The notes under the pieces are model-generated. The model searched no databases. It was not told the DNA's origin and worked only from the letters and a program-made list of their open reading frames with translations. Positions 1-9,895 of a stretch of DNA of 9,895 bases are shown one piece after another (positions within the stretch are counted from its first letter, which is position 1; each line of letters starts with the position of its first letter). The position numbers and the translations under genes were made by a program. The stretch lies in the sequence record MF443784.1. One strand, written 5' to 3'.

Positions 1-354
1 CCCCCCCCCCCAACTCGGACCACGGCAAACCCCACGTGCGGACCATAAGGGCGACCTTCAACTCCCCTATTTAAAAACCCCCCCATCCTTTCATCACAAA
101 TTCACGCAACTANACGCAACTGACCAACGTCGGGCTAACGGGCGGGGTTAATAAACGTTCAGACCACGAAAGCTTATATAGTTGTTTCACACGCGTGCAA
201 AAAATGGGTTTTAGGGAAATGAGTGTAATACCCGTCAAAGTGAGGCAATTCGTGTTAGGGCGGGTTTGACGAGTAGTTTCGGGTATTATGGAAAACCCAA
301 CGTTTCTCTCCAACATGGCAAAATCCTTTTTAACCCCCCCATCACGACCTTCCG
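1..354 (+). repeat. Left inverted terminal repeat (354 bp), starting with C11
   Basis: Reverse complement of 9541-9895 (position i pairs with 9895-i). Identity ends after TTCCG at 354. N at 113 corresponds to G9782 and so is C. Confidence 0.98.
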
Positions 355-497: not shown

Positions 498-857
498 ATG
501 TCGTCCAAAAAAGAGTCTCAAAAAGGTGGCCTCAGCCTTGACCAGTTTTTTGATGCGGTGAAGGATGAGGTCGTTCTCCTACGCCTGAACGCGGGGGACT
601 ACGTCTTCCTAGAGGACGTGGAGTTCGAGAGTGTGAGGGTCTCCAAGAACGGTAATAAGGTGGTGGACCTGAAGGGTAGGATCGCCCAGACCAACACTAG
701 CCTCATGCCAGGACAGATGGTCCGTTTCACCACTTCCATACCGAACGCCATGGAAGTTGCCACGTTTCTAAAGCAGGGTATGAGGTACATCCTCATCAAG
801 AAGGGGGACCGCATATATGTTAATGGATATGTTGAGTTACCGAGAAAGGCACAGTGA
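498..857 (+). CDS. Hypothetical protein (119 aa), beta-rich, possible OB-fold ssDNA-binding protein
   Basis: ATG-started ORF and first gene of the left operon. Alternating hydrophobic strands with turns (LNAGDYVFLEDVEF, VSKNGNKVVDLKG, YILIKKGDRIYV). The fold is inferred only. Confidence 0.75.
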   Translation: MSSKKESQKGGLSLDQFFDAVKDEVVLLRLNAGDYVFLEDVEFESVRVSKNGNKVVDLKGRIAQTNTSLMPGQMVRFTTSIPNAMEVATFLKQGMRYILIKKGDRIYVNGYVELPRKAQ

Positions 858-1167
858 AGTCTACTTGGTTCAGCCCTCCCTTTTTGCCCCCTACGACCTC
901 ACGAACAGGAAGTTTTCCGTCCAGATGCACACGATATACCCTAGGAGGGGGGTCGTCACCAGGCTGACCCTCCCCCAATTCGTCGTTGGTGCAGTGTTGG
1001 AGGGCATGACCCTACGGTTCGAATACCCATACTACCTGACTTGGATGAATTGGGTAAAGGGCTATCCATGGTCTCTCGTCCCCGTTCTCAGGTGTGAAGA
1101 CCTGATTGAAGAATTCGGTATAGTGAGGGGGGTGTTGTTATGCAGAAAATTGGGCCTGAGGAGGTAG
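817..1167 (+). CDS. Hypothetical protein (up to 116 aa)
   Basis: Fills the gap between ORFs 498 and 1140 and overlaps both. Several ATGs (817/823/829) make the start uncertain. No motif recognised. Confidence 0.65.
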   Translation: MLMDMLSYRERHSEVYLVQPSLFAPYDLTNRKFSVQMHTIYPRRGVVTRLTLPQFVVGAVLEGMTLRFEYPYYLTWMNWVKGYPWSLVPVLRCEDLIEEFGIVRGVLLCRKLGLRR

Positions 1168-1535
1168 TGAGGTACATCCTGGACCATCCCGCGACCATAA
1201 TATGGTATAAGGAGTATATCACGGGAAAGACGGGGAAACCGTTCTTCACTGAGGTATACAGTAAGGACTTCGCCGAGAAGGGGGTGGCCGTGGACTTAGT
1301 CACAGTGAACTGGAGCCGAAAAATCATGATCTTGGTCCCTGTCAAGACGTCGTTGGGGATAAGGGGTTCTGAGGTGGTCCTAACGGACCCTAGACGTGTA
1401 CTGTGGATGGGGGGAGACATCCCCTTCCTAGGTAACTGGATGTTTTACGCTAAATGGGCATGGTATGTGGCCCAAACACCACGACACCCACTGAATAAAT
1501 ACGTAAGGAAGAAGATGAGGGAGGAGGGTGTATAA
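1140..1535 (+). CDS. Hypothetical protein (131 aa)
   Basis: G-rich SD-like tract upstream; its TAA overlaps the next ATG (TAATG). Trp/Tyr-rich with a basic C-terminus. Confidence 0.8.
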   Translation: MQKIGPEEVVRYILDHPATIIWYKEYITGKTGKPFFTEVYSKDFAEKGVAVDLVTVNWSRKIMILVPVKTSLGIRGSEVVLTDPRRVLWMGGDIPFLGNWMFYAKWAWYVAQTPRHPLNKYVRKKMREEGV

Positions 1536-2080
1536 TGCCACAGGATAACCCCGATATGGGGAACATAACACGTGCGGGGTACCGAATCACGACCCGATGG
1601 ACGTGGGATGACATCAGGAGGGCCATGTTTTGTTTCGAGACGGTCTCCAACGCGAACCAGTTCGTGGGGTGTGTAAGGAAGAGGAGGACGGACGCTCTTG
1701 CTCTTTATAGGTACCTGAGGGACGTGAGACAGGGGACGGGCCTAGTCTGGGAGCTGTTGCCCCCGTCATTCGAGGAGGAGGGGTCTAACCCAGGGGGGGA
1801 GGGGACTTGTTTTACTCTCGTAATCCCAGATACCTACTTCTATTATCTTTGGGTAGACCCATCCGAGATAATCTCGGACATCTTAGCCACGACGTCATGG
1901 GAGGTGTCCTACCCAGGGGCCTACCGAATTACCAGACCTCCCGCGAACGCAGACGTGATATGGTGGCCCATGCGACCTGAGTACTTTACATATGTTATCT
2001 GTACAGGTCAGCCTAACCCTGCATTTCAGCAGGCCCTGGACCAGTATGTACTGAAGCTAAAGGAGATCCTAGGTGAGTAA
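1535..2080 (+). CDS. Hypothetical protein (181 aa); terminal-protein candidate by position only
   Basis: GGAGG SD upstream, translationally coupled, largest ORF of the left arm, and directly upstream of the AEP-like gene. Confidence 0.8.
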   Translation: MPQDNPDMGNITRAGYRITTRWTWDDIRRAMFCFETVSNANQFVGCVRKRRTDALALYRYLRDVRQGTGLVWELLPPSFEEEGSNPGGEGTCFTLVIPDTYFYYLWVDPSEIISDILATTSWEVSYPGAYRITRPPANADVIWWPMRPEYFTYVICTGQPNPAFQQALDQYVLKLKEILGE

Positions 2081-2081
2081 A

Positions 2082-2411
2082 ATGATCACACTGGACCACG
2101 ACATCCCGTTCGACCAGTATAGACAGTCGGCGAAGGGCCAACTCGTATATGAGTTTTGCAGGATGTTCCGTGTGAGGTGTTGGTATAGACGGTCAGCGTC
2201 GGGAAACGTTCACGTCGCTATGGACATGAACGTGGACTTCCTTAGAGAATTGGAAATCAGGGCAATCCTTCTCGACGACCCCATGAGGATATTGAACGAC
2301 TTGCGTCGGCACGCATTCCACGTCCCAACGGGTAGGCTCTGGGACGTGAAGGTGGACAGGGAAGGCAAAAGGCAGGCGGGTCAGTGGGAGGTCTTGTTTT
2401 CCCCTGAGTAG
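2082..2411 (+). CDS. Minimal archaeo-eukaryotic primase (AEP)-like protein (109 aa; 112 aa if the GTG at 2073 is used)
   Basis: Motifs in AEP order: I ITLDHD, II RRSASGNVH, III LLDD. GGTGA SD at 2072-2076 favours ATG 2082. The ORF is solid; the function is inferred from motifs. Confidence 0.6.
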   Translation: MITLDHDIPFDQYRQSAKGQLVYEFCRMFRVRCWYRRSASGNVHVAMDMNVDFLRELEIRAILLDDPMRILNDLRRHAFHVPTGRLWDVKVDREGKRQAGQWEVLFSPE

Positions 2412-2444: not shown

Positions 2445-2822
2445 ATGAGTCAAAGTCAGCCTACTCAGGAACAAACCCCCCCACAAGAGGAGGGGAAGGA
2501 CGAGAGCCAGTGGACGGAATGTGAAGTCTGTGGGAAGAAAGTGCGGATGAACATGTACAAACGTCATATGTCTGCGGTGCATGGGTTCATTACGAAAGAG
2601 GAGTACCAGAGGCTCAAAGAGGAGGTGGAGAAGACTATACAATCTACGATACACAGTGCACTCCAGGAGCACTGGAAGGGGCACTACAAAAGCTTAAGCG
2701 AACTTCTTGAGGAAGGGGAAAAACATGCCGAGACGTGTCCTACATGCCAAAAGGAGTTGGAGGAGTGGCTCAAGAAAAAACGGAACGAGAAATACAAACC
2801 CGCTAATAGGAAGTGGCTCTAA
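2445..2822 (+). CDS. C2H2 zinc-finger protein (125 aa), putative regulator
   Basis: CEVCGKKVRMNMYKRHMSAVH = C-x2-C-x11-H-x4-H (2520-2582), plus a C-terminal H..H..H/CPTC cluster. ATG 2445 is preferred over TTG 2436. Confidence 0.8.
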   Translation: MSQSQPTQEQTPPQEEGKDESQWTECEVCGKKVRMNMYKRHMSAVHGFITKEEYQRLKEEVEKTIQSTIHSALQEHWKGHYKSLSELLEEGEKHAETCPTCQKELEEWLKKKRNEKYKPANRKWL

Positions 2823-3284
2823 ATGACCAAGAAGAAGAAGGAGGAACAGGAGGCCCCTAAGGAGGAGGGGCAGGCCACTCCCGAAACCCCAAGTCCTGAA
2901 ACCCCTCAGGAGCCTCAGAAGGAAGACCCCGTTCAGGTCATCATGAGGCTGACGACCGTAATACAGGAACAGCAGAAACGTATAGACCAGTTGGAAGCAA
3001 ACCTCAACAGCGTGATGGAATTCCTGAAGGCACAATCCCAGGCACCCCAAGGTCAGGGAGGAGGAGGGGGTCTAGTGGAGGCACTAGTACCCCTCTTAGG
3101 GAAGTTGATGGAGCCTTCGAAAGACCCCCTACGGGATATCGCCCTAGAACTAATGATCGACAGCATGAAATCGAACGTTGAGCTCTCGAAGGCCATAACA
3201 CAGAAGATCATCCAAGGGGTGCAAGACCGAGTCGCGAGGAACGTCGTGGAGACTGTCGCCACGGGGGTGATTACACACGAATGA
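2823..3284 (+). CDS. Coiled-coil protein (153 aa)
   Basis: ATG abuts the previous TAA. Disordered E/P/K-rich N-terminus, heptad segment (LTTVIQEQQKRIDQLEANLNSV), poly-Gly linker and a helical C-terminal half. Confidence 0.85.
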   Translation: MTKKKKEEQEAPKEEGQATPETPSPETPQEPQKEDPVQVIMRLTTVIQEQQKRIDQLEANLNSVMEFLKAQSQAPQGQGGGGGLVEALVPLLGKLMEPSKDPLRDIALELMIDSMKSNVELSKAITQKIIQGVQDRVARNVVETVATGVITHE

Positions 3285-3318
3285 GCGTATTAGAATTATC
3301 AACTTAACAAGGAAGTTA

Positions 3319-3441
3319 ATGATTGAACTGGGGGTGGGTACGTACTACCCCATGGTACAATACCGTCTTACCAGTCTCCCAGAGGAACAGATAAAGAGGG
3401 CGTATAAAATCATAAGGGATGAGGTGAAAACGTGGCCATAG
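3319..3441 (+). CDS. Small hypothetical protein (40 aa, MIELGVGTYYPMVQYRLTSLPEEQIKRAYKIIRDEVKTWP); not in the supplied ORF track
   Basis: Hand-translated. AAGGAAG upstream; fills an otherwise empty 150-bp gap and overlaps the next gene start by 10 nt. Confidence 0.6.
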   Translation: MIELGVGTYYPMVQYRLTSLPEEQIKRAYKIIRDEVKTWP

Positions 3442-3749
3442 TCCATGAGGAGGTAACGTTTCATACTGAAGTGGATGATGAGAGCGTAGAGGCAATCAGG
3501 AGGATCATAAGGGACCAGTGTGGAGAAAACCCAAAGCCTGAATGTTGGGGCCCGTTGGTGTGGTCCATGTTCGACAGCGTGGCCCGTGCCATCCCGTGCC
3601 CAAAGTGCCGAGGGGAGGCACTGGAATTCCTGACCTTTTTGCATGATTTAATTAACATACAGAAGGGTAGTGCTATATACAATACCCCGCAATTCCTTAG
3701 GAAGAAAAAGGAAGAGATACTGAGCCTACTCAGGACCCGAGGGATATAA
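3432..3749 (+). CDS. Minimal Erv1/Alr-like FAD-dependent sulfhydryl oxidase (105 aa)
   Basis: GAGGTGA SD before the GTG. WGPLVW ... IPCPKC ... FLHDLINIQKG..IY mirrors the Erv/Alr signature (WGPxxW, PCxxC, HNxVNxxLGK) with internal deletions. Confidence 0.7.
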   Translation: MAIVHEEVTFHTEVDDESVEAIRRIIRDQCGENPKPECWGPLVWSMFDSVARAIPCPKCRGEALEFLTFLHDLINIQKGSAIYNTPQFLRKKKEEILSLLRTRGI

Positions 3750-3757
3750 TATAAATA
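3750..3757 (+). promoter_or_regulatory. TATA box (TATAAATA) for the core structural operon
   Basis: About 30 bp upstream of ATG 3788, which lacks an SD; typical geometry for a Sulfolobales leaderless or short-leader transcript. Confidence 0.6.
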
Positions 3758-3787
3758 GGAGAACTGATGTAACTATGGTAGAGAGCC

Positions 3788-4054
3788 ATGGTGTCCAATA
3801 GAGAACTCGCCAAAAGGCTCAGCCAGTCGGCCAGGGAGGCGTGGAATTCAGAGGAGGGCATGAGGATCAGAGAGGAGCTAAGTGCAGACTCTGCCTCCTA
3901 TGGGGCGTGTCTGAGGAGAGTCATGGAAAGTGGAGGAGGCAGTCGTGGTTACAAGGATTGCGCGAGGAGGTCAGGAATAGGTACGGCGTTTGCCAGTGTC
4001 TGGGGGTCTACAAAGGCCTATGGTAGGCCGATGGTGGAAGTAGTAGCGAGGTGA
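3788..4054 (+). CDS. Small Arg-rich protein (88 aa), putative DNA-binding virion core protein
   Basis: First gene after the strong TATA box. R/S/G/A-rich and helical with two Cys (Cx16C). The function is inferred from composition and position. Confidence 0.75.
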   Translation: MVSNRELAKRLSQSAREAWNSEEGMRIREELSADSASYGACLRRVMESGGGSRGYKDCARRSGIGTAFASVWGSTKAYGRPMVEVVAR

Positions 4055-4059
4055 CCTAG

Positions 4060-4389
4060 GTGGACTTCTCCAGACAAACGTGGGAGGGGCCAGTGGCTGT
4101 TGGCGTCGGCGGGTACGTGTGGAACAAGGTAAAGGGGAACACGCAAGTTCAGACGTTCGTGAGCAAGGTAGGTGGCAAGACGAATGCAGGGCTCATCTTA
4201 GTGGCCCTAGGCGTAGTCGCTAAGGCATACAAACCCGAGTCAGAAGCCATGAATATACTGGGGTACCTGTTGGCGGGACTCGGTGCGGGGGCACTCGGTG
4301 ACGACTTGCCCGCCACTGGGTCACAGGCGACGTTTACGAATAAAAGCCCAGAGTACCCTAGTCCAGTTAGTGGGGTGAACGTGCTGTGA
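4060..4389 (+). CDS. Putative virion membrane protein (109 aa)
   Basis: GAGGTGA SD 5 nt before the GTG. Hydrophobic Gly-rich helices (AGLILVALGVVA; ILGYLLAGLGAGALG). Confidence 0.8.
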   Translation: MDFSRQTWEGPVAVGVGGYVWNKVKGNTQVQTFVSKVGGKTNAGLILVALGVVAKAYKPESEAMNILGYLLAGLGAGALGDDLPATGSQATFTNKSPEYPSPVSGVNVL

Positions 4390-4799
4390 AACTCTACATG
4401 AAAACGATTGAGATCCAATATTCCATCCCTGCGAGTGCACCATCCGAGTCACAGGTGCCTGGAGTGTTCATAGACCTCTCCAGTGGCACTAGCCAAGGCC
4501 AACTCCAAGTCCCCGTGAACCAAGAGTGGGTCATCATAGACGTCTACAACAGGGGGTCTCAGGACGTCGGCGTAGATGCCGTGGCGACGTTCACTAAGAA
4601 CAGCGTCTCCAACGTCCTCACTACGGACCCAGTCTCATCCCTGAACATCTCGAACCCATCCAGACCAACCTACCCGCCAATACAGATGGCCCCAGGGACG
4701 ATATTGACCTCCAAAGTCACTACGCTCACGTCCAACGGCACTAGTGCGGCCGTGGATAACCTATTCATAAAGGTCAAGATCATAGACTACTCGCAGTAA
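4386..4799 (+). CDS. Putative major capsid protein, single jelly-roll type (137 aa)
   Basis: GGTGA SD and GTGA overlap. All-beta pattern with about 8 strands and no TM segment. Last gene of the TATA-driven operon, before a T6 tract. The fold is inferred. Confidence 0.6.
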   Translation: MKLYMKTIEIQYSIPASAPSESQVPGVFIDLSSGTSQGQLQVPVNQEWVIIDVYNRGSQDVGVDAVATFTKNSVSNVLTTDPVSSLNISNPSRPTYPPIQMAPGTILTSKVTTLTSNGTSAAVDNLFIKVKIIDYSQ

Positions 4800-4818
4800 A
4801 CACGCGTAAGACATCTCC

Positions 4819-4824
4819 TTTTTT
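4819..4824 (+). terminator. Archaeal oligo-T terminator
   Basis: CTCCTTTTTTAGT 20 nt after the stop of ORF137; the same TTTTTTAGT occurs at 8559. Confidence 0.6.
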
Positions 4825-4847
4825 AGTAGTATTTCCTTCTTTATAGT

Positions 4848-5525
4848 ATGGCATGCCAGACTATACAAGACCTATCGATAGGCCCGTACACCATAGAATC
4901 GGGTCAGGTCTGTGTGGAGGGCACTACCTCAGGGACGGCTAGCCTGACTATGAAAGTGGGGCCGTTCACGTACACCAAGACTATCCCATGGGGGGCGGTA
5001 AACCCCCAACAGACGTTGGGTACGTCCTCAGGGAGGGTCTACCTTATCGGGACGAACCCCCTGTCGTCACTCCTAGTGGACGACGTCCTAACGGTGGCTG
5101 AGTATGCACAGAAAGTGGCGTCGTACTTAGGGTACAGCGGTTCGTTTTCCATAGTGAACGTGGGTTTGACGAATGGCTCAGACTGCAACGACTGTGTAGT
5201 TTACGTGGACTACGTCGCCTCTTCTCCTCCTCTTGCGGTAGCCCTAGTGATCGCTCTCGTGATCGTTTTCGTCATAGCTATCGTATTGGGTATCTATTTC
5301 ATTTCGGCCGCGATAGAGAGTTTTCAGCCCGCACCTCCCACGCCCCCTCCTCCAGGGAGTCCCCCGTCCCTGTACCAACAGTACTACCAGGAGTACGCCC
5401 AGTATTTGAAGGAGAAACAAACGGCCTCAATCACGGGAGGGGTATTCGGCACGTCCACGGCCCTAGTGGCGTTAGGGATAGCCATTTTAGCCTTCTTGGC
5501 GTTTACTGACCATGGTGGGAAGTGA
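4848..5525 (+). CDS. Membrane-anchored virion protein (225 aa, two TM segments)
   Basis: Beta-rich N-domain with 4 Cys, TM1 LAVALVIALVIVFVIAIVLGIYFI, Pro-rich/YQ loop, C-terminal TM2 ALVALGIAILAFLAF. Confidence 0.85.
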   Translation: MACQTIQDLSIGPYTIESGQVCVEGTTSGTASLTMKVGPFTYTKTIPWGAVNPQQTLGTSSGRVYLIGTNPLSSLLVDDVLTVAEYAQKVASYLGYSGSFSIVNVGLTNGSDCNDCVVYVDYVASSPPLAVALVIALVIVFVIAIVLGIYFISAAIESFQPAPPTPPPPGSPPSLYQQYYQEYAQYLKEKQTASITGGVFGTSTALVALGIAILAFLAFTDHGGK

Positions 5526-5809
5526 TGGTGTACCAGATATACGACGGGCAATACACGGTTTACCCCGTGGGAAACCCCCAGGTCACGCTCATCAGGGTAG
5601 ACGTAGCGGGGAGAGTGAAAATCATGATCCTCCCCACGGTGTCAGAGGCCCTTCAACTGACCCTGAACGGAAACTCAGGTTACCTGAACCAGGGAAACGT
5701 CCTCTCGGCGGGAAATTGGTACGAGTTCGAATACGTGAGTTGTGGGAAAGACATCATAAGCATAAATGGGACACAGCAAGGAGTTTACCTTAGGGTGATA
5801 GTGTATTGA
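5522..5809 (+). CDS. Small beta-rich structural protein (95 aa), possible turret or minor capsid subunit
   Basis: GTGA overlap with the previous gene; alternating hydrophobic strands throughout; lies in the structural operon. Confidence 0.8.
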   Translation: MMVYQIYDGQYTVYPVGNPQVTLIRVDVAGRVKIMILPTVSEALQLTLNGNSGYLNQGNVLSAGNWYEFEYVSCGKDIISINGTQQGVYLRVIVY

Positions 5810-6825
5810 TTAGAGGTCAGATACACAAACTCTCCAAGTGGGAGTTAAGGGACTACGCTAGGACACTAGTCCCCGTCTTTGAATCCCACGAGGTGGACGG
5901 CACTAGGGACATGAAAATCGTGGACGCCGTGATATCGTACGCCATGAAAGGGACGAAACCCTGGCTGAGGAGGGGGTCAGCCCTCCAGGGCTTTATAGGG
6001 CCTAGGATGTCTGTCCTCGAGGGTTACCTCATCTTCCCCACGTCAGGTATTGAGCCCGTGACCATCCAGTCCACTACCCTAGAGAACTCCTACCTAGTCC
6101 TAGATATCGTGGGGGCAGGTGGAGGAGGTGGTGGTGGAGGTGGTGGGAACACCACGGCCACTACCCCGTTCGCCCAGGGTGGTGGAGGTGGGGGAGACGG
6201 TGGCCGTCTCATTATCAGGACCCAGGGGCCACTAGTCTCTGGGACCCAGTTCACAGCCCAACTGGGAGGGCCAGGTGGGACAGGTGGAGGGACAGGTGCC
6301 ACAGGGACACCAGGTTCAGCACCAAACGGGGCGACTCAGGTAGTCCTAGGGAACGGCACACTCACGCTCAGTGTGTCAGGTGCGTCAGCCCCTACCATGC
6401 CCCCGACAGCAGGAGGACAGGAGGCAGGAGGGTCAGGAGGTGCAGGAGGGTCAGCAGTGTTCACGTACTTGCCAACGACGCCCATATTCTCGGCCATACA
6501 GTTGAACCCAAGGACGTCCTTCCTCTCGAATTACTCGGGCGTACTGGACCAGGGTATTGGTGGAGACGGCGTTGGGTCTGAGTACTTCACCCTGTCCAAC
6601 GCCACGCCTATATTCGTCTCGACGCCACAAGGAACGAGGGTCACTGGGGGAAGCCCAGGGGGCACAGGCACCTCAGCCACGGCGAACGTCCCCTCTGGGG
6701 CAATCCCGCTCAGGGGGTCAGGTGCAGGAGGAGGAGGGGGACAGAACTCCTCTTCCGCCCCAACAGCGGGAGGGAACGGCGGGTCTGGAGGGCCTGGACC
6801 TATCATTATCTTGGTGATAGGATGA
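5806..6825 (+). CDS. Glycine-rich virion protein (339 aa), probable turret or adhesin
   Basis: GGTGA SD before the TTG (TTGA overlap). DIVGAGGGGGGGGGG...GGGGGGDGG...GAGGGGG...GGNGGSGGPGPIIILV pattern like the glycine-rich domains of phage structural proteins. Several NxS/T sequons. Confidence 0.85.
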   Translation: MIRGQIHKLSKWELRDYARTLVPVFESHEVDGTRDMKIVDAVISYAMKGTKPWLRRGSALQGFIGPRMSVLEGYLIFPTSGIEPVTIQSTTLENSYLVLDIVGAGGGGGGGGGGNTTATTPFAQGGGGGGDGGRLIIRTQGPLVSGTQFTAQLGGPGGTGGGTGATGTPGSAPNGATQVVLGNGTLTLSVSGASAPTMPPTAGGQEAGGSGGAGGSAVFTYLPTTPIFSAIQLNPRTSFLSNYSGVLDQGIGGDGVGSEYFTLSNATPIFVSTPQGTRVTGGSPGGTGTSATANVPSGAIPLRGSGAGGGGGQNSSSAPTAGGNGGSGGPGPIIILVIG

Positions 6826-7040
6826 CAGACTTGGTCACCGTGGCAGTGTTAGGGGTACAGACGGCCGTTTTCATCTACGCTAGTGCCAAACTGAGGAAGA
6901 TGAGCGAGATGGCCGACAAGTTGGCGTCAGCCCTGTCCAACATAGCAAAGGAGATAGAGACGGCGTCCATGGACATGAAAAGCATACAAAGGGAGATGAC
7001 AGAACTGGAAGACTTAATTCGGACAGCACTGAGGGAATAG
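6822..7040 (+). CDS. Small membrane protein with a coiled coil (72 aa)
   Basis: ATGA overlap and GGTGA SD. N-terminal hydrophobic helix followed by heptads. Confidence 0.8.
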   Translation: MTDLVTVAVLGVQTAVFIYASAKLRKMSEMADKLASALSNIAKEIETASMDMKSIQREMTELEDLIRTALRE

Positions 7041-7042
7041 GT

Positions 7043-7453
7043 ATGAGCTGTCAGACATGTGGTCAGCAGGGCGTGTGTTACGTCCTGGAACACGTGGGTA
7101 CTGAGCCCATCTATATAAACGGGCAACAGTACGGCCAGGGCGACTTTTGTTTCTCCTCCCCTGAGCTCACGATAGAATACCAGGGCGTACAGTACCAGAT
7201 CGACATGTCCTACGCCCCCACAGTGCAGAACATATACGGGTGTTGTCCCTCAGGTACCACAGCCAAACTCACGACGGTGACTACGATACAGGGACAGAAC
7301 ACTCCCATATTCGTCCCGTATGCCGTCCTAGTGTCTCAAGGTACCACGTCCACTAGTAGTACCACGCCTAGTGTCCTAAGTAAGGTACCGTGGTGGCTCA
7401 TCATACTACTCGTCATACTGGGGGCTATACTCCTAGGAGGAGGAAACCCATGA
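7043..7453 (+). CDS. Cys-rich, C-terminally anchored virion protein (136 aa)
   Basis: N-terminal CQTC, six Cys in total, Thr/Ser linker, then WWLIILLVILGAILL. Confidence 0.85.
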   Translation: MSCQTCGQQGVCYVLEHVGTEPIYINGQQYGQGDFCFSSPELTIEYQGVQYQIDMSYAPTVQNIYGCCPSGTTAKLTTVTTIQGQNTPIFVPYAVLVSQGTTSTSSTTPSVLSKVPWWLIILLVILGAILLGGGNP

Positions 7454-8556
7454 ATTACACTTGGTACGTGCAGAACCAAGACCCCTCGACGATCCAGTTC
7501 TGTGTCATGCAGTCTGGAGGGTATAACAACTGCACCTCAATACCAGGGAACAGCACAGAGCCGTTCACGATACCAGACATGGACGTGCAGATATATGGCA
7601 CCCCCACGGGGTACTACGTGTACTACTCTAGCGTTGGGGTGAAGACTAGTACCAAGTCCCTCCCGTCATCAGGATCAACGATCACGGTGCCCCCATACAC
7701 GGGATGTGACCCCCTACTCACGCAAGGACAGGGGTACCCCCCACTCGTGCCGTGTTCGTCCCCGTTGATCTTCCTGAAGAGCGAGAGCACCCCTGCCATG
7801 TTTATCGAGAACTGGGGGGCAGAGACGTCAGGGTTTTCATACGGGTACGGGATAGCGGGGAGCCAATTGGCCATAGCGACAGGGCCAAACTGGGTATACT
7901 ACCGACAGTACCCCCAGGCACAGGTATACCTTATCGGAAACTGGAAGGTGGTGAACGGAAACTACGTAGACATGGACTCGGGGAAAACGTTCTGTGGGTG
8001 CCAGGGGAAGAGCGTGTACGTCATACCCACGTCTGACCTACCTGGGCCGTCCTCAGGGACTACGTCCACAGGGACTAGTACCACGGGGACTTCCACGAGT
8101 ACAACAGGGACTCCCACAGGGACGTCCACTCAGCAGACGACACAGCCCACGACAGGTATCCTGAACGTGGCTAACCAGTGTTCGACGGGGGTAGTCGTGT
8201 ACGCGGGAGGGAAAACGGCATACGCACCCCCATACCATTCCATCAGCCTAGAAGTACCCATCCCCACGGGGTATACGCTTATTAGCCAGGGTCAGACAGT
8301 TGGTAAGGGGACGGTGTACCAGAGCGGGGAGTACGTGTCCCCAAGTTCTTGTCCCTCTGTTAGCCCTACACCCAGCCCTACCCCGACACCGTCCCCAACT
8401 GGGGGACAGACCACTTCCACGACTACGACTACCACGACTACCCAGACCACTTCAACACAGACTACCCAGAACACACAGCCCCCAACGACGCCTAGCATGT
8501 CGTGGGGTCTTATCCTACTCTTGGTAATCCTGGGGGCACTAGCCCTCTCAAGTTAA
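7450..8556 (+). CDS. Thr/Pro-rich, C-terminally anchored spike or receptor-binding candidate (368 aa)
   Basis: ATG 7450 (ATGA overlap, GGAGGAGG SD) is preferred to 7390. Beta-rich Cys-containing domains are separated by T/S/P linkers; NxS/T sequons; C-terminal TM WGLILLLVILGALAL. Confidence 0.85.
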   Translation: MNYTWYVQNQDPSTIQFCVMQSGGYNNCTSIPGNSTEPFTIPDMDVQIYGTPTGYYVYYSSVGVKTSTKSLPSSGSTITVPPYTGCDPLLTQGQGYPPLVPCSSPLIFLKSESTPAMFIENWGAETSGFSYGYGIAGSQLAIATGPNWVYYRQYPQAQVYLIGNWKVVNGNYVDMDSGKTFCGCQGKSVYVIPTSDLPGPSSGTTSTGTSTTGTSTSTTGTPTGTSTQQTTQPTTGILNVANQCSTGVVVYAGGKTAYAPPYHSISLEVPIPTGYTLISQGQTVGKGTVYQSGEYVSPSSCPSVSPTPSPTPTPSPTGGQTTSTTTTTTTTQTTSTQTTQNTQPPTTPSMSWGLILLLVILGALALSS

Positions 8557-8558
8557 GC

Positions 8559-8564
8559 TTTTTT
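8559..8564 (+). terminator. Archaeal oligo-T terminator
   Basis: T6 two nt after the stop of the last gene of the large structural operon. Confidence 0.6.
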
Positions 8565-8680
8565 AGTCCAGGTCTCCCATTATACCTGAGCGGTGCGAGG
8601 TGGATGTGACGGGAGGCTCTGGGAATGTCCGAGAGACGGAGGCGTACCCGTCCTCCACTGCACCGCACTAGGTGAGTCAC

Positions 8681-8911
8681 ATGAGCCAAGTCCCAAAGAA
8701 GAGACTCGGGGCAAGGGTCATCAGAGCGGTTTTCAACGGGGTCTCCTTAGGCATCCTAGGAGGGGCAGGAGTGTACGTCCTAGCCCAGGGGGTGAACACG
8801 TTATCAGGCACCACTACTTTGAACCCTACGGCGTTTCTCCTGTTGGTCTTGGGGGCGTCCATCACGGCCAGTGTGGGGATAGAACTCTCCAAGGACCTAA
8901 GCGGTGAGTAG
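8681..8911 (+). CDS. Small two-helix membrane protein (76 aa; 79 aa from GTG 8672)
   Basis: GGTGA SD at 8671-8675 before ATG 8681. Basic N-terminus (PKKR), then two hydrophobic helices joined by a VNTLSGTTT turn. Confidence 0.8.
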   Translation: MSQVPKKRLGARVIRAVFNGVSLGILGGAGVYVLAQGVNTLSGTTTLNPTAFLLLVLGASITASVGIELSKDLSGE

Positions 8912-8959
8912 TCTCAGTCAAGTCTCCTTTATTTTACCCCCTGAACCAATAGACCCAAA

Positions 8960-9199
8960 ATGGATGTCCAAACCCAACTCAAAGAATGGATTTCCCTGTT
9001 GGACGACAGGCTGTCGTCCATAGAAATGAGCCTCAAGTCCCTCCAAAAGAGACTTGAGCAGGCAGAAAAGCGACAAGAAGAACTTGAGGAGGCGTTCGAC
9101 CAGCTGAAAGAAGAAATAGACGACTGTGTGGCTGACACGACCTACCTCCACGACGTACTGGAGGAGGTCCAAGACGACATAGACGACCTAAGGAAGTGA
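8960..9199 (+). CDS. Acidic coiled-coil protein (79 aa)
   Basis: Continuous heptads (LDDRLSSIEMSLKSLQKRLEQAEKRQEELEEAFDQL); GTGA overlap with the next gene. Confidence 0.85.
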   Translation: MDVQTQLKEWISLLDDRLSSIEMSLKSLQKRLEQAEKRQEELEEAFDQLKEEIDDCVADTTYLHDVLEEVQDDIDDLRK

Positions 9200-9417
9200 G
9201 CCCCGTGGAGTTCGTATACAAGATCAACGACGACACGGTCACAGTGTGGGTCACTGACGAGAAGACGGGGAAGAAAGTGGCGTCCCTACAAATGCCGAAG
9301 AAGGACGTGGACTACGTCGCGAGACGTGCAATACAAGAACTCGACATAGCCCCAGATGAGGCATACGACTTAGCGGTCTACTTCACCTACGTTAAGGTCA
9401 CCTGGGGCCTCCTCTGA
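9196..9417 (+). CDS. Hypothetical protein (73 aa)
   Basis: GTGA-coupled start, protein-like beta-beta-beta-alpha-alpha pattern, followed by a T6 tract. Confidence 0.75.
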   Translation: MSPVEFVYKINDDTVTVWVTDEKTGKKVASLQMPKKDVDYVARRAIQELDIAPDEAYDLAVYFTYVKVTWGLL

Positions 9418-9422
9418 ACCTC

Positions 9423-9428
9423 TTTTTT
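9423..9428 (+). terminator. Oligo-T terminator, followed by a 7-bp hairpin (9443-9460)
   Basis: T6 five nt after the last stop; CCTGACC-CTAC-GGTCAGG downstream. Confidence 0.55.
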
Positions 9429-9527
9429 CTCTCGTACTTACCCCTGACCCTACGGTCAGGCTCTACTTCTCTCACGAACCTGACTCCCCCATCCTCATCA
9501 AACATATGATTTATTTCACAGCAGGGC

Positions 9528-9537
9528 TTTATATAAA
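9528..9537. promoter_or_regulatory. Palindromic TATA-like element TTTATATAAA at the inner edge of the right ITR
   Basis: Self-complementary AT box 3 nt before the ITR; there is no equivalent next to the left ITR. Confidence 0.4.
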
Positions 9538-9540
9538 TTG

Positions 9541-9895
9541 CGGAAGGTCGTGATGGGGGGGTTAAAAAGGATTTTGCCATGTTGGAGAGAAACGTTGGGT
9601 TTTCCATAATACCCGAAACTACTCGTCAAACCCGCCCTAACACGAATTGCCTCACTTTGACGGGTATTACACTCATTTCCCTAAAACCCATTTTTTGCAC
9701 GCGTGTGAAACAACTATATAAGCTTTCGTGGTCTGAACGTTTATTAACCCCGCCCGTTAGCCCGACGTTGGTCAGTTGCGTGTAGTTGCGTGAATTTGTG
9801 ATGAAAGGATGGGGGGGTTTTTAAATAGGGGAGTTGAAGGTCGCCCTTATGGTCCGCACGTGGGGTTTGCCGTGGTCCGAGTTGGGGGGGGGGGG
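9541..9895 (-). repeat. Right inverted terminal repeat (355 bp), ending in G12
   Basis: Reverse complement of 1-354; differs only by one extra terminal G. Confidence 0.98.

Follow-up and report, generated by a model that had tools for sequence, protein, structure and literature searches.

The window analysed here is a stretch of 9,895 nucleotides that megablast identified, at 100% identity, as the complete linear genome of the Metallosphaera turreted icosahedral virus (MTIV) strain MTIV2 (MF443784.1), whose annotation lists 21 genes, all on the + strand. We examined c109, a left-arm gene encoding a protein of 12 kDa, which an initial annotation had proposed to be an ultra-minimal core of an archaeo-eukaryotic primase (AEP)-like enzyme in a genome without a polymerase. 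We found that c109 is a member of a previously unnamed protein family that spans MTIV-like viruses, alphasphaerolipoviruses and lipothrixviruses, and we read its first half as resembling primase-polymerases (PrimPols) in sequence signature and in predicted local structure. The features of the locus and of the genome ends are collected in Table 1. The GTG at 2073 that an open reading frame (ORF) finder lists falls within the Shine-Dalgarno-like site. Among 29 distinct metagenomic copies of c109, 62, 36 and 106 sites varied at the first, second and third codon positions, respectively, and no stop codon was found. The + frame is thus under purifying selection and the gene is real, which rules out the short opposite-strand ORFs as the gene.

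Table 1. Features of the c109 locus and of the MTIV2 genome ends (positions are those of the window; ITR, inverted terminal repeat)
Feature	Position	Strand	Basis or remark
c109, 109 aa, single domain, founding cultivated member of the family	2082-2411	+	CDS annotated 'hypothetical protein c109'
GGTGA, Shine-Dalgarno-like, 5 nt before ATG 2082, within the end of b181	2072-2076	+	Sequence read
Motif I, ITLDHD, residues 2-7 (D5, D7), putative metal ligands	2085-2102	+	Predicted strand beta1; conservation
Motif II hairpin, R36-R-S38-A-S40-G41-N-V-H44, putative (d)NTP phosphate-binding loop	2187-2213	+	Between strands 33-37 and 43-47
R60-x4-D65-D66-x2-R69-x3-D73-x2-R76, second acidic cluster, candidate motif III, conserved arginines	2259-2309	+	
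C-terminal three-stranded beta meander with conserved R85, D88, K90, G100, W102	2334-2399	+	Strands 89-92, 95-98, 103-106
c125, zinc-finger/zinc-ribbon protein directly downstream of c109, possible partner	2445-2822	+	CEVC...H-x4-H, CPTC; weak zinc-finger Pfam matches
c119, a116, c131, b181, fast-evolving left-arm module exchanged with both ITRs	498-2080	+	MTIV2 vs MTIV1 identity
Left ITR	1-354		Begins with C11
Right ITR	9541-9894		Window end is G12

The initial annotation had recognised three AEP-type motifs in c109, in the order and spacing of AEP motifs I to III, and had placed them exactly: the codon of D5 lies at 2094, SASGNVH closes with H44 at 2211, and LLDD has D65 at 2274. These residues are conserved throughout the family. 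The distances between them (39 residues from D5 to H44 and 21 from H44 to D65) are also close to those of known enzymes, which are 34 and 26 in ORF904 of pRN1 and 37 and 18-24 in the NrS-1 PrimPol. When c109 was shuffled, a loose version of the three-motif pattern appeared in 1% of the shuffles and a strict version in 0.005%. The motifs are beyond chance because they are rare in shuffles and, which is the stronger argument, because the motif residues are the most conserved positions of the family.

The family was delimited by an exhaustive profile search over 1.84 billion cluster representatives, which gave 118 clusters (50% identity) at E<=1e-3, nearly all of them stand-alone proteins of 105-160 aa. 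Close homologues of c109 (75-87% identity) are abundant in hot-spring metagenomes, and its sole match in a PHROG scan was its own family, phrog_31183 (PHROG 31183; E 8e-75). A pattern scan of 185k species genomes revealed no relatives of c109. The full-length hidden Markov model (HMM) of the family has the signature D-x-D / R-x-S-x-x-G-x-x-H / R-x4-DD-x2-R-x3-D-x2-R, which c109 carries in full. In 95 diverse homologues D5, R36, S38, R60, D66, R69 and W102 were invariant, and D7, H44, D65, D73, R76 and K90 were at least 90% conserved; in the 11 members from cultivated viruses D5, D7, G41, H44, D65, D66, R69 and R76 were invariant. AFV2 alone among these isolates differs at the position of S38, where it has Thr, and the haloviral members have the hairpin SSSGLGMH, a G-x-H form.

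Using the family HMM, we identified members in MTIV1, in MTIV3 (ORF14), in 'Sulfolobus polyhedral virus 3' (SPV3, ORF13) and in Sulfolobales Beppu virus 1 (SBV1, gp38), in the lipothrixviruses AFV1 (ORF144, E 2.5e-8) and AFV2 (ORF116, E 1.1e-7), and in the alphasphaerolipoviruses HHIV-2 (ORF30, E 1.6e-12), SH1 (ORF41, E 1.7e-11) and HCIV-1 (ORF36, E 4.9e-9). PH1 ORF35 was added by tblastn; thus, all four alphasphaerolipoviruses encode a member, and the gene is 93% similar between PH1 and SH1. A Foldseek comparison of the predicted structure against BFVD returned AFV2 ORF116, a 267-aa betalipothrixvirus protein, AFV1 ORF144, an HHIV-2 protein and an SBFV3 protein, with a PSV protein as a marginal match (E 0.09); nothing further fell below E 0.05 except the self match and A0A3Q8Q424. 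A weak tblastn match of HHIV-2 ORF30 to Dhillonvirus coliphages was dismissed, as it falls in the capsid-gene region. The named hosts of the family are archaeal viruses with linear double-stranded DNA genomes, and those that were checked have no recognised DNA polymerase. None of the family genes of the named viruses carries a functional annotation, and no mention of a link between the MTIV gene and the alphasphaerolipoviruses and lipothrixviruses was found in the searchable literature.

We then compared c109 with the AEPs. The AEP core is described as consisting of two modules that bear the motifs hhhDhD/E, sxH and hD/E (PMC4538821). In c109, I2-T-L-D5-H-D7 has the form of motif I and lies on a predicted strand (residues 2-6), and G41-N42-V43-H44 has the form of motif II and follows the hairpin turn, with H44 aligning to H115 of NrS-1 and H145 of pRN1. 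When the profile of the cultivated isolates was compared, using hhalign, with the PrimPol domain of NrS-1, the score was 22.4-23.3 (P 0.003-0.005) and the alignment was colinear, placing residues 1-103 of c109 on 74-172 of NrS-1. D5 and D7 were paired with D78 and D80, S38-A-S40-G41 with S108-P-S110-G111, and H44 with H115. This score was not reached by any of 60 column shuffles or by any of 146 unrelated viral proteins (maximum 17.2), and the reversed template gave 10.6. The same profile scored 18.4-20.6 against the pRN1 domain (P 0.01-0.03), above the 146 controls, and one of the 60 shuffles reached this value. With a merged profile of 102 sequences NrS-1 was still first, at 21.1 against a control maximum of 19.5.

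The alignment to NrS-1 bears on the serine of the hairpin. In NrS-1, S108 contacts the gamma-phosphate of the dNTP, S108A abolishes activity and S108T keeps some of it, and the serine loop takes the place of the zinc finger of other PrimPols (PMC8718748). S38 of c109, invariant in the 95 homologues, aligns with S108, and the isolate that departs from serine has threonine. The N300 PrimPol of NrS-1 gp28, which has no zinc finger and is the best hhalign partner of c109, shares with it a strand that closes with hhhDhD, a roughly 25-residue helix, and an S-x-S-G-(x)-G/N-x-H hairpin; the distance from D78 to H115 is 37 residues, compared with 39 from D5 to H44. The two differ in what surrounds this unit: in NrS-1 an N-terminal AEP module of about 75 residues precedes motif I, motif III is borne on a strand, and a helix-bundle domain and a helicase are also present, whereas c109 begins at motif I, has two helices and the DD loop after the hairpin, and ends at 109 residues. 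The prim-pol of pRN1 ORF904, which comes from the same Sulfolobales host clade and uses D111/E113, H145 and D171, also aligned colinearly, motif I being matched to D111, with ITLD opposite VILD and the region of H44 opposite GGIH. Unlike c109, it has a zinc knuckle, a helix bundle and a superfamily 3 helicase and lacks a serine-rich loop in motif II, and over all profiles its signal was weaker (P 0.01-0.1).

AlphaFold2 with the 95-sequence alignment gave a single-domain model of c109 with a mean predicted local distance difference test score (pLDDT) of 96.9 and a predicted template-modelling (TM) score of 0.86; it superseded an earlier model built from 22 close sequences (pLDDT 74.5). The model consists of a strand (2-6), two helices (10-15, 17-28), the two hairpin strands, two further helices (53-62, 67-78) and the meander (89-106), in the order b1-a-a-b2-b3-a-a-b-b-b. 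In this model the DxD motif is at the end of strand 1, S38 to G41 form the hairpin turn, and H44 opens strand 3. The model suggests that the DxD motif, the hairpin, H44 and D65/D66 would all lie at one end of a beta-alpha-beta-beta-alpha unit of the ferredoxin or RNA-recognition motif (RRM)-like type. Among the weak matches of the model in the PDB, those with the top query TM-scores (TMq 0.42-0.44) were recurrently AEPs, namely Prim-PolC (5op0, TMq 0.43, E 1.1) and LigD-Pol (4mky, 0.44; 2fao, 0.43), and CAPP (7nqf) also appeared, but these matches are non-significant. Prim-PolC and LigD-Pol, AEPs of bacterial nonhomologous end joining, thus gave the highest fold scores, over 78-92 columns; in contrast to c109 they are two-module proteins of about 290-330 aa, and with Foldseek E-values of 1.1-2.8 and probabilities of at most 0.35 a shared fold is not established. 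The other weak fold matches included generic HPr and KH folds and the Rep protein of adeno-associated virus (AAV). A classical palm, as in polymerases, GGDEF proteins and class III cyclases, was rejected for c109, as the beta2-beta3 hairpin turn, S-A-S-G-N, has no conserved acidic residue.

Several results weigh against placing c109 among the AEPs. The two-module core is absent, because the protein starts at motif I: residue 2 of 109 already belongs to this motif, with no N-terminal unit ahead of it. Also missing are the zinc finger and the helix-bundle domain used for de novo priming. D65 and D66 are in the loop between helices 53-62 and 67-78 and not on a strand, and the candidate for motif III is ambiguous, since hhalign paired D73 with D171 of pRN1 but D65/D66 with D133/D134 of NrS-1. 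The clustering of the Asp and His residues is read from predicted topology only. No Pfam family matched c109 at E<=1 and no NCBIfam model matched; among 97 members, AEP families of Pfam were unenriched even at E<=10, with one weak match to Herpes_UL52 (E 0.041). Sequence searches of the PDB with three profiles gave no AEP, only noise from the Spt6 SH2 domain and L22/YbaB, and the c109 HMM did not match pRN1 ORF904 or the NrS-1 primase. The hhalign comparison covered two AEP families with shallow templates, a protein search having given only pRN1-like proteins at 55-68% identity and IMG/VR scans with NrS-1 only 2 loci; HH probabilities for AEP templates were at most 7%, and with the 95-sequence profile P was about 0.1 for both templates and the NrS-1 alignment was non-colinear. 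In spite of the confident model, Foldseek found nothing in the PDB below E 0.6 with either model (best E 0.7), the best AEP had E=1.1, and Prim-PolC and LigD-Pol superposed with a root-mean-square deviation of 7-10 A. Finally, c109 is absent from the MTIV proteins annotated as virion structural.

The proposal of an AEP-like core thus holds in part. Motifs I and II, the start of the fold (strand with DxD, helix, hairpin with SxSGxH) and a modest, controlled profile match stand, whereas the two-module core is absent and motif III is ambiguous, its candidate lying in a predicted loop. Priming or tailing of the homopolymer ends, which the initial annotation also proposed, is inferred. Of the profile and fold comparisons with AEP families that had been suggested as a check, hhalign with NrS-1 gave a modest signal with the isolate profile and a weaker one with the 95-sequence profile, and the Pfam, PDB sequence and Foldseek searches were non-significant. 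We conclude that membership of c109 in the AEP superfamily is not demonstrable on the present evidence, one defining feature being absent.

These limits raise the question of whether the AEP-like motifs could be convergent or coincidental, with c109 serving a non-replicative role, for example in host takeover or counter-defence. Such an origin would fit the absence of database support for AEP homology and a modest hhalign signal that rests largely on two short motifs, these being low-complexity patterns whose loose version is met among shuffles at the frequency given above. But the family spans viruses of Sulfolobales and of Halobacteria, hosts with differing defences and physiology; all four alphasphaerolipoviruses have it as a core gene; and in MTIV it is a conserved gene inside a hypervariable arm. 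A core replicative role fits this wide host span, core-gene status and conservation better than an accessory one, and we regard convergence as the least probable of the explanations considered here.

A second question is whether the conserved residues could serve phosphodiester chemistry of another kind. In a metal-dependent nuclease or phosphoesterase, D5, D7, D65 and D66 together with H44 would hydrolyse or transfer a phosphodiester, and the protein could nick or process the ITR ends, resolve replication intermediates or degrade host nucleic acid. Four conserved Asp, one His and several Arg and Lys suit many nucleases as well as they suit transferases, and the AEP fold is common to rolling-circle endonucleases (PMC4538821), with AAV Rep among the weak fold matches of c109. 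Small nucleases of the ferredoxin-like type, for instance Cas2, act as dimers, and the c109 family has tandem-duplicated members: two metagenomic members (P0051 and P0093) carry two copies of the domain, the second without the DxD and hairpin residues. Such duplications with a degenerate second copy suggest that the domain works as a dimer.

However, no nuclease family was found by sequence or by fold, and a nuclease would leave unexplained the S-x-S-G-x-H hairpin that aligns with the dNTP-binding loop of a PrimPol. HUH Reps belong to an AEP-related fold class and, like c109, carry motif I on the first strand and a His motif on the third, but they have a second His and a catalytic Tyr. In the c109 family only H44 is conserved, position 46 varies (A/I/K/L/Y/V) and there is no family-wide Tyr, so that an HUH Rep was rejected; a match to the HUH nucleases, which the initial annotation had named as a finding that would speak against its proposal, thus did not emerge. 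PIN, HAD, HNH and Cas2 assignments were rejected as well, the signature residues being missing or the strand topology incompatible. We therefore regard a nuclease or phosphoesterase as unlikely, although it is the strongest of the alternatives.

If the protein acts at genome ends, the ends themselves are of interest. The MTIV2 ITRs are a perfect match over 354 nt, and the homopolymer ends that had been noted are present, with unequal runs of C11 and G12 within the one genome. MTIV1 ends in C12...G12 on an ITR sequence different from that of MTIV2. A third ITR type, of 324 bp, was found in a shotgun metagenome contig that ends in C10...G10; a complete relative of 10,029 bp has an ITR of 366 bp that starts with CCTCCTCCCCCCCC; and further end-reaching contigs start with C6, or with C10 after 5 nt. 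C-rich ends (C6-C12 or CCTCCTC8) are thus kept across MTIV-like genomes with at least four unrelated ITR sequences. We ruled out that the poly-C/G ends are an artefact of tailing during sequencing: shotgun assemblies with other ITRs also start with C6-C10 or CCTCCTC8, and C-rich ends in independent assemblies with differing ITRs are therefore a conserved feature. The variable length of the C-rich terminus is what a slippage-based regeneration would predict.

The ITRs have some other features. Base 113 of the window, in the left ITR, is an ambiguous N, for which the right copy implies C. A TTTAAA-like box with a C7-8 run within a few bases after it occurs at 71-84 and 327-340 and is mirrored in the right ITR, and MTIV1 has counterparts around 43, 124 and 295; these sets could be promoters or repeated binding or initiation sites. 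An unannotated ORF of 68 aa lies wholly within the ITR and hence is present in two copies (110-316 on the - strand and 9579-9785 on the + strand).

A further alternative is a protein without catalysis. In such a reading c109 would be an end-binding or terminal protein, or a phosphate-recognising adaptor, in which R-x-S-x-x-G-x-x-H binds phosphate and the acidic residues are structural. The invariant S/T38 could serve for linkage. In the PDB sequence searches, the only recurrent match was to the phosphate-binding strand region of the Spt6 SH2 domain (E 0.026-0.2). Alphasphaerolipoviruses carry terminal proteins to which, in the accessible parts of the reports, no gene is assigned, and all four of these viruses encode a family member. 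On the other hand, the Spt6 E-values are non-significant and SH2 domains were absent from the fold search, and an SH2 assignment of c109 was rejected on this local match without fold support. The DxD and DD residues are invariant from viruses of thermoacidophiles to those of halophiles, which is typical of metal catalysis, and the virion proteins annotated for MTIV and HHIV-2 do not include the family protein. We consider a non-catalytic role less likely than a nuclease.

We also analyzed the genomic neighbourhood of c109. MTIV1 and MTIV2 are mosaic: they are about 100% identical from about 2540 to 9590, but in the left arm and both ITRs the identity is only 30-70%. The amino acid identity between the two viruses is 54% for c119, 38% for a116, 43% for c131 and 53% for b181, compared with 84% for c109 and 100% from c125 onward, so that c109, at the edge of the exchanged module, is the only conserved gene in the variable, non-structural left arm. 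It seems that replicon ends and left-arm genes are swapped together as a unit, the right ITR being kept identical to the left, and this co-variation of the ITRs with the left-arm genes is as expected if left-arm genes recognise the ends. Directly downstream, MTIV3 likewise has a c125 homologue after its c109 homologue, and in HHIV-2, SH1 and PH1 the family gene is followed by small CxxC proteins. Since archaeal viruses commonly encode such proteins, this does no more than suggest a zinc-ribbon neighbour as the partner of c109.

Elsewhere in the window, the structural protein c137 (4386-4799) weakly matches, at E 7e-5 and short of the curated cut-off, the Pfam family for VP4, the major capsid protein of SPV1, which by sequence weakly links MTIV to portoglobovirus-like capsids. 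The glycine-rich structural protein a339 (5806-6825) reaches the threshold of the Pfam family Gly_rich_2 (24.3 bits), and its G/C-rich, low-complexity coding lifts the local GC content to 0.62. In HCIV-1, ORF35 (3471-4502), directly after the family gene, is a 'DNA topoisomerase' in RefSeq and has no Pfam match at E<=0.01. HHIV-2 ORF36 (24623-25063), in the same leftward block as the family gene, matches DUF4326 (E 2.8e-11).

No ORF of the MTIV2 genome, in which the longest annotated ORF has 368 aa, matched a polymerase domain in Pfam; at this level, the description of the genome as lacking a polymerase holds. The protein-primed systems of phi29, PRD1, adenovirus and the archaeal viruses His1, His2 and ABV resemble MTIV2 in having linear double-stranded DNA, ITRs and reiterated terminal bases, but they depend on a family B polymerase of their own, whereas MTIV and the sphaerolipoviruses encode none. 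For SH1, PH1, HHIV-2 and HCIV-1, the accessible parts of the reports describe ITRs and record no polymerase gene (PMC3622292, PMC4958249). In the same parts, terminal proteins are shown for SH1 and PH1 and stated to occur in the family, and for HCIV-1 they are no more than suggested (PMC3622292, PMC4958249). In the case of MTIV, how priming occurs is expressly described as undetermined (PMC5867849).

Among the explanations considered, we tentatively favour, at somewhat less than an even chance, that c109 is a candidate single-module, PrimPol-like nucleotidyl transferase that binds metal and nucleotide and acts at the C-rich genome ends; its sequence signature and predicted structure point in this direction. 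In such an enzyme D5 and D7, together with D65 and D66, would hold divalent metals, and R36, S38, S40, G41 and H44 would hold the triphosphate of the incoming (d)NTP. Nucleotides would be transferred at or near the 3'-G-run of the template strand, onto a nascent short primer or onto a protein hydroxyl, and host polymerases would then elongate the product and copy the genome. Nucleotidyl transfer at DNA ends is a known capability of AEPs, according to the accessible part of the literature. In AEPs, the initiating nucleotide has to be held by a helix-bundle or zinc module (PMC8718748). The helix-bundle, zinc and N-terminal modules are absent from c109, so that its de novo priming would require either a second protomer or a partner. 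A dimer and/or neighbouring products, such as the zinc-finger protein c125 and the left-arm proteins, would probably be needed, and extension or tailing should be less demanding for c109 than de novo priming.

A more far-reaching proposal, which we regard as improbable, less so than convergence but more so than a non-catalytic end-binding protein, is that the family is the missing replication-initiation enzyme of the polymerase-less linear archaeal viruses. The enzyme would be a dimeric, one-domain descendant or relative of PrimPols. It would prime by slippage of oligo(C) on the 3'-terminal G run, or by self-deoxynucleotidylation on Ser/Thr38, thereby becoming the terminal protein, and would then hand the 3'-OH to a host polymerase. 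If true, priming from a protein or from the end would here take place with no family B polymerase encoded by the virus.

How replication proceeds in MTIV, SH1, PH1, HHIV-2, HCIV-1 and the lipothrixviruses is acknowledged in the reports, as far as their accessible text goes, to be an open question (PMC3622292, PMC4958249, PMC5867849): these viruses have linear genomes, mostly with ITRs and some with terminal proteins, yet no recognised polymerase or primase gene. The most valuable outcome of this work is that an unannotated 109-residue gene of MTIV is tied to a core gene of the alphasphaerolipoviruses and to genes of the lipothrixviruses. The invariant residues that these genes share appear to reproduce the metal- and dNTP-binding motifs of primase-polymerases, which would provide one testable candidate for several virus families. 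If active, c109 would be by far the smallest nucleotidyl transferase of the PrimPol-like kind, and would bear on how one RRM-like unit gave rise to the AEP, Rep and palm folds.

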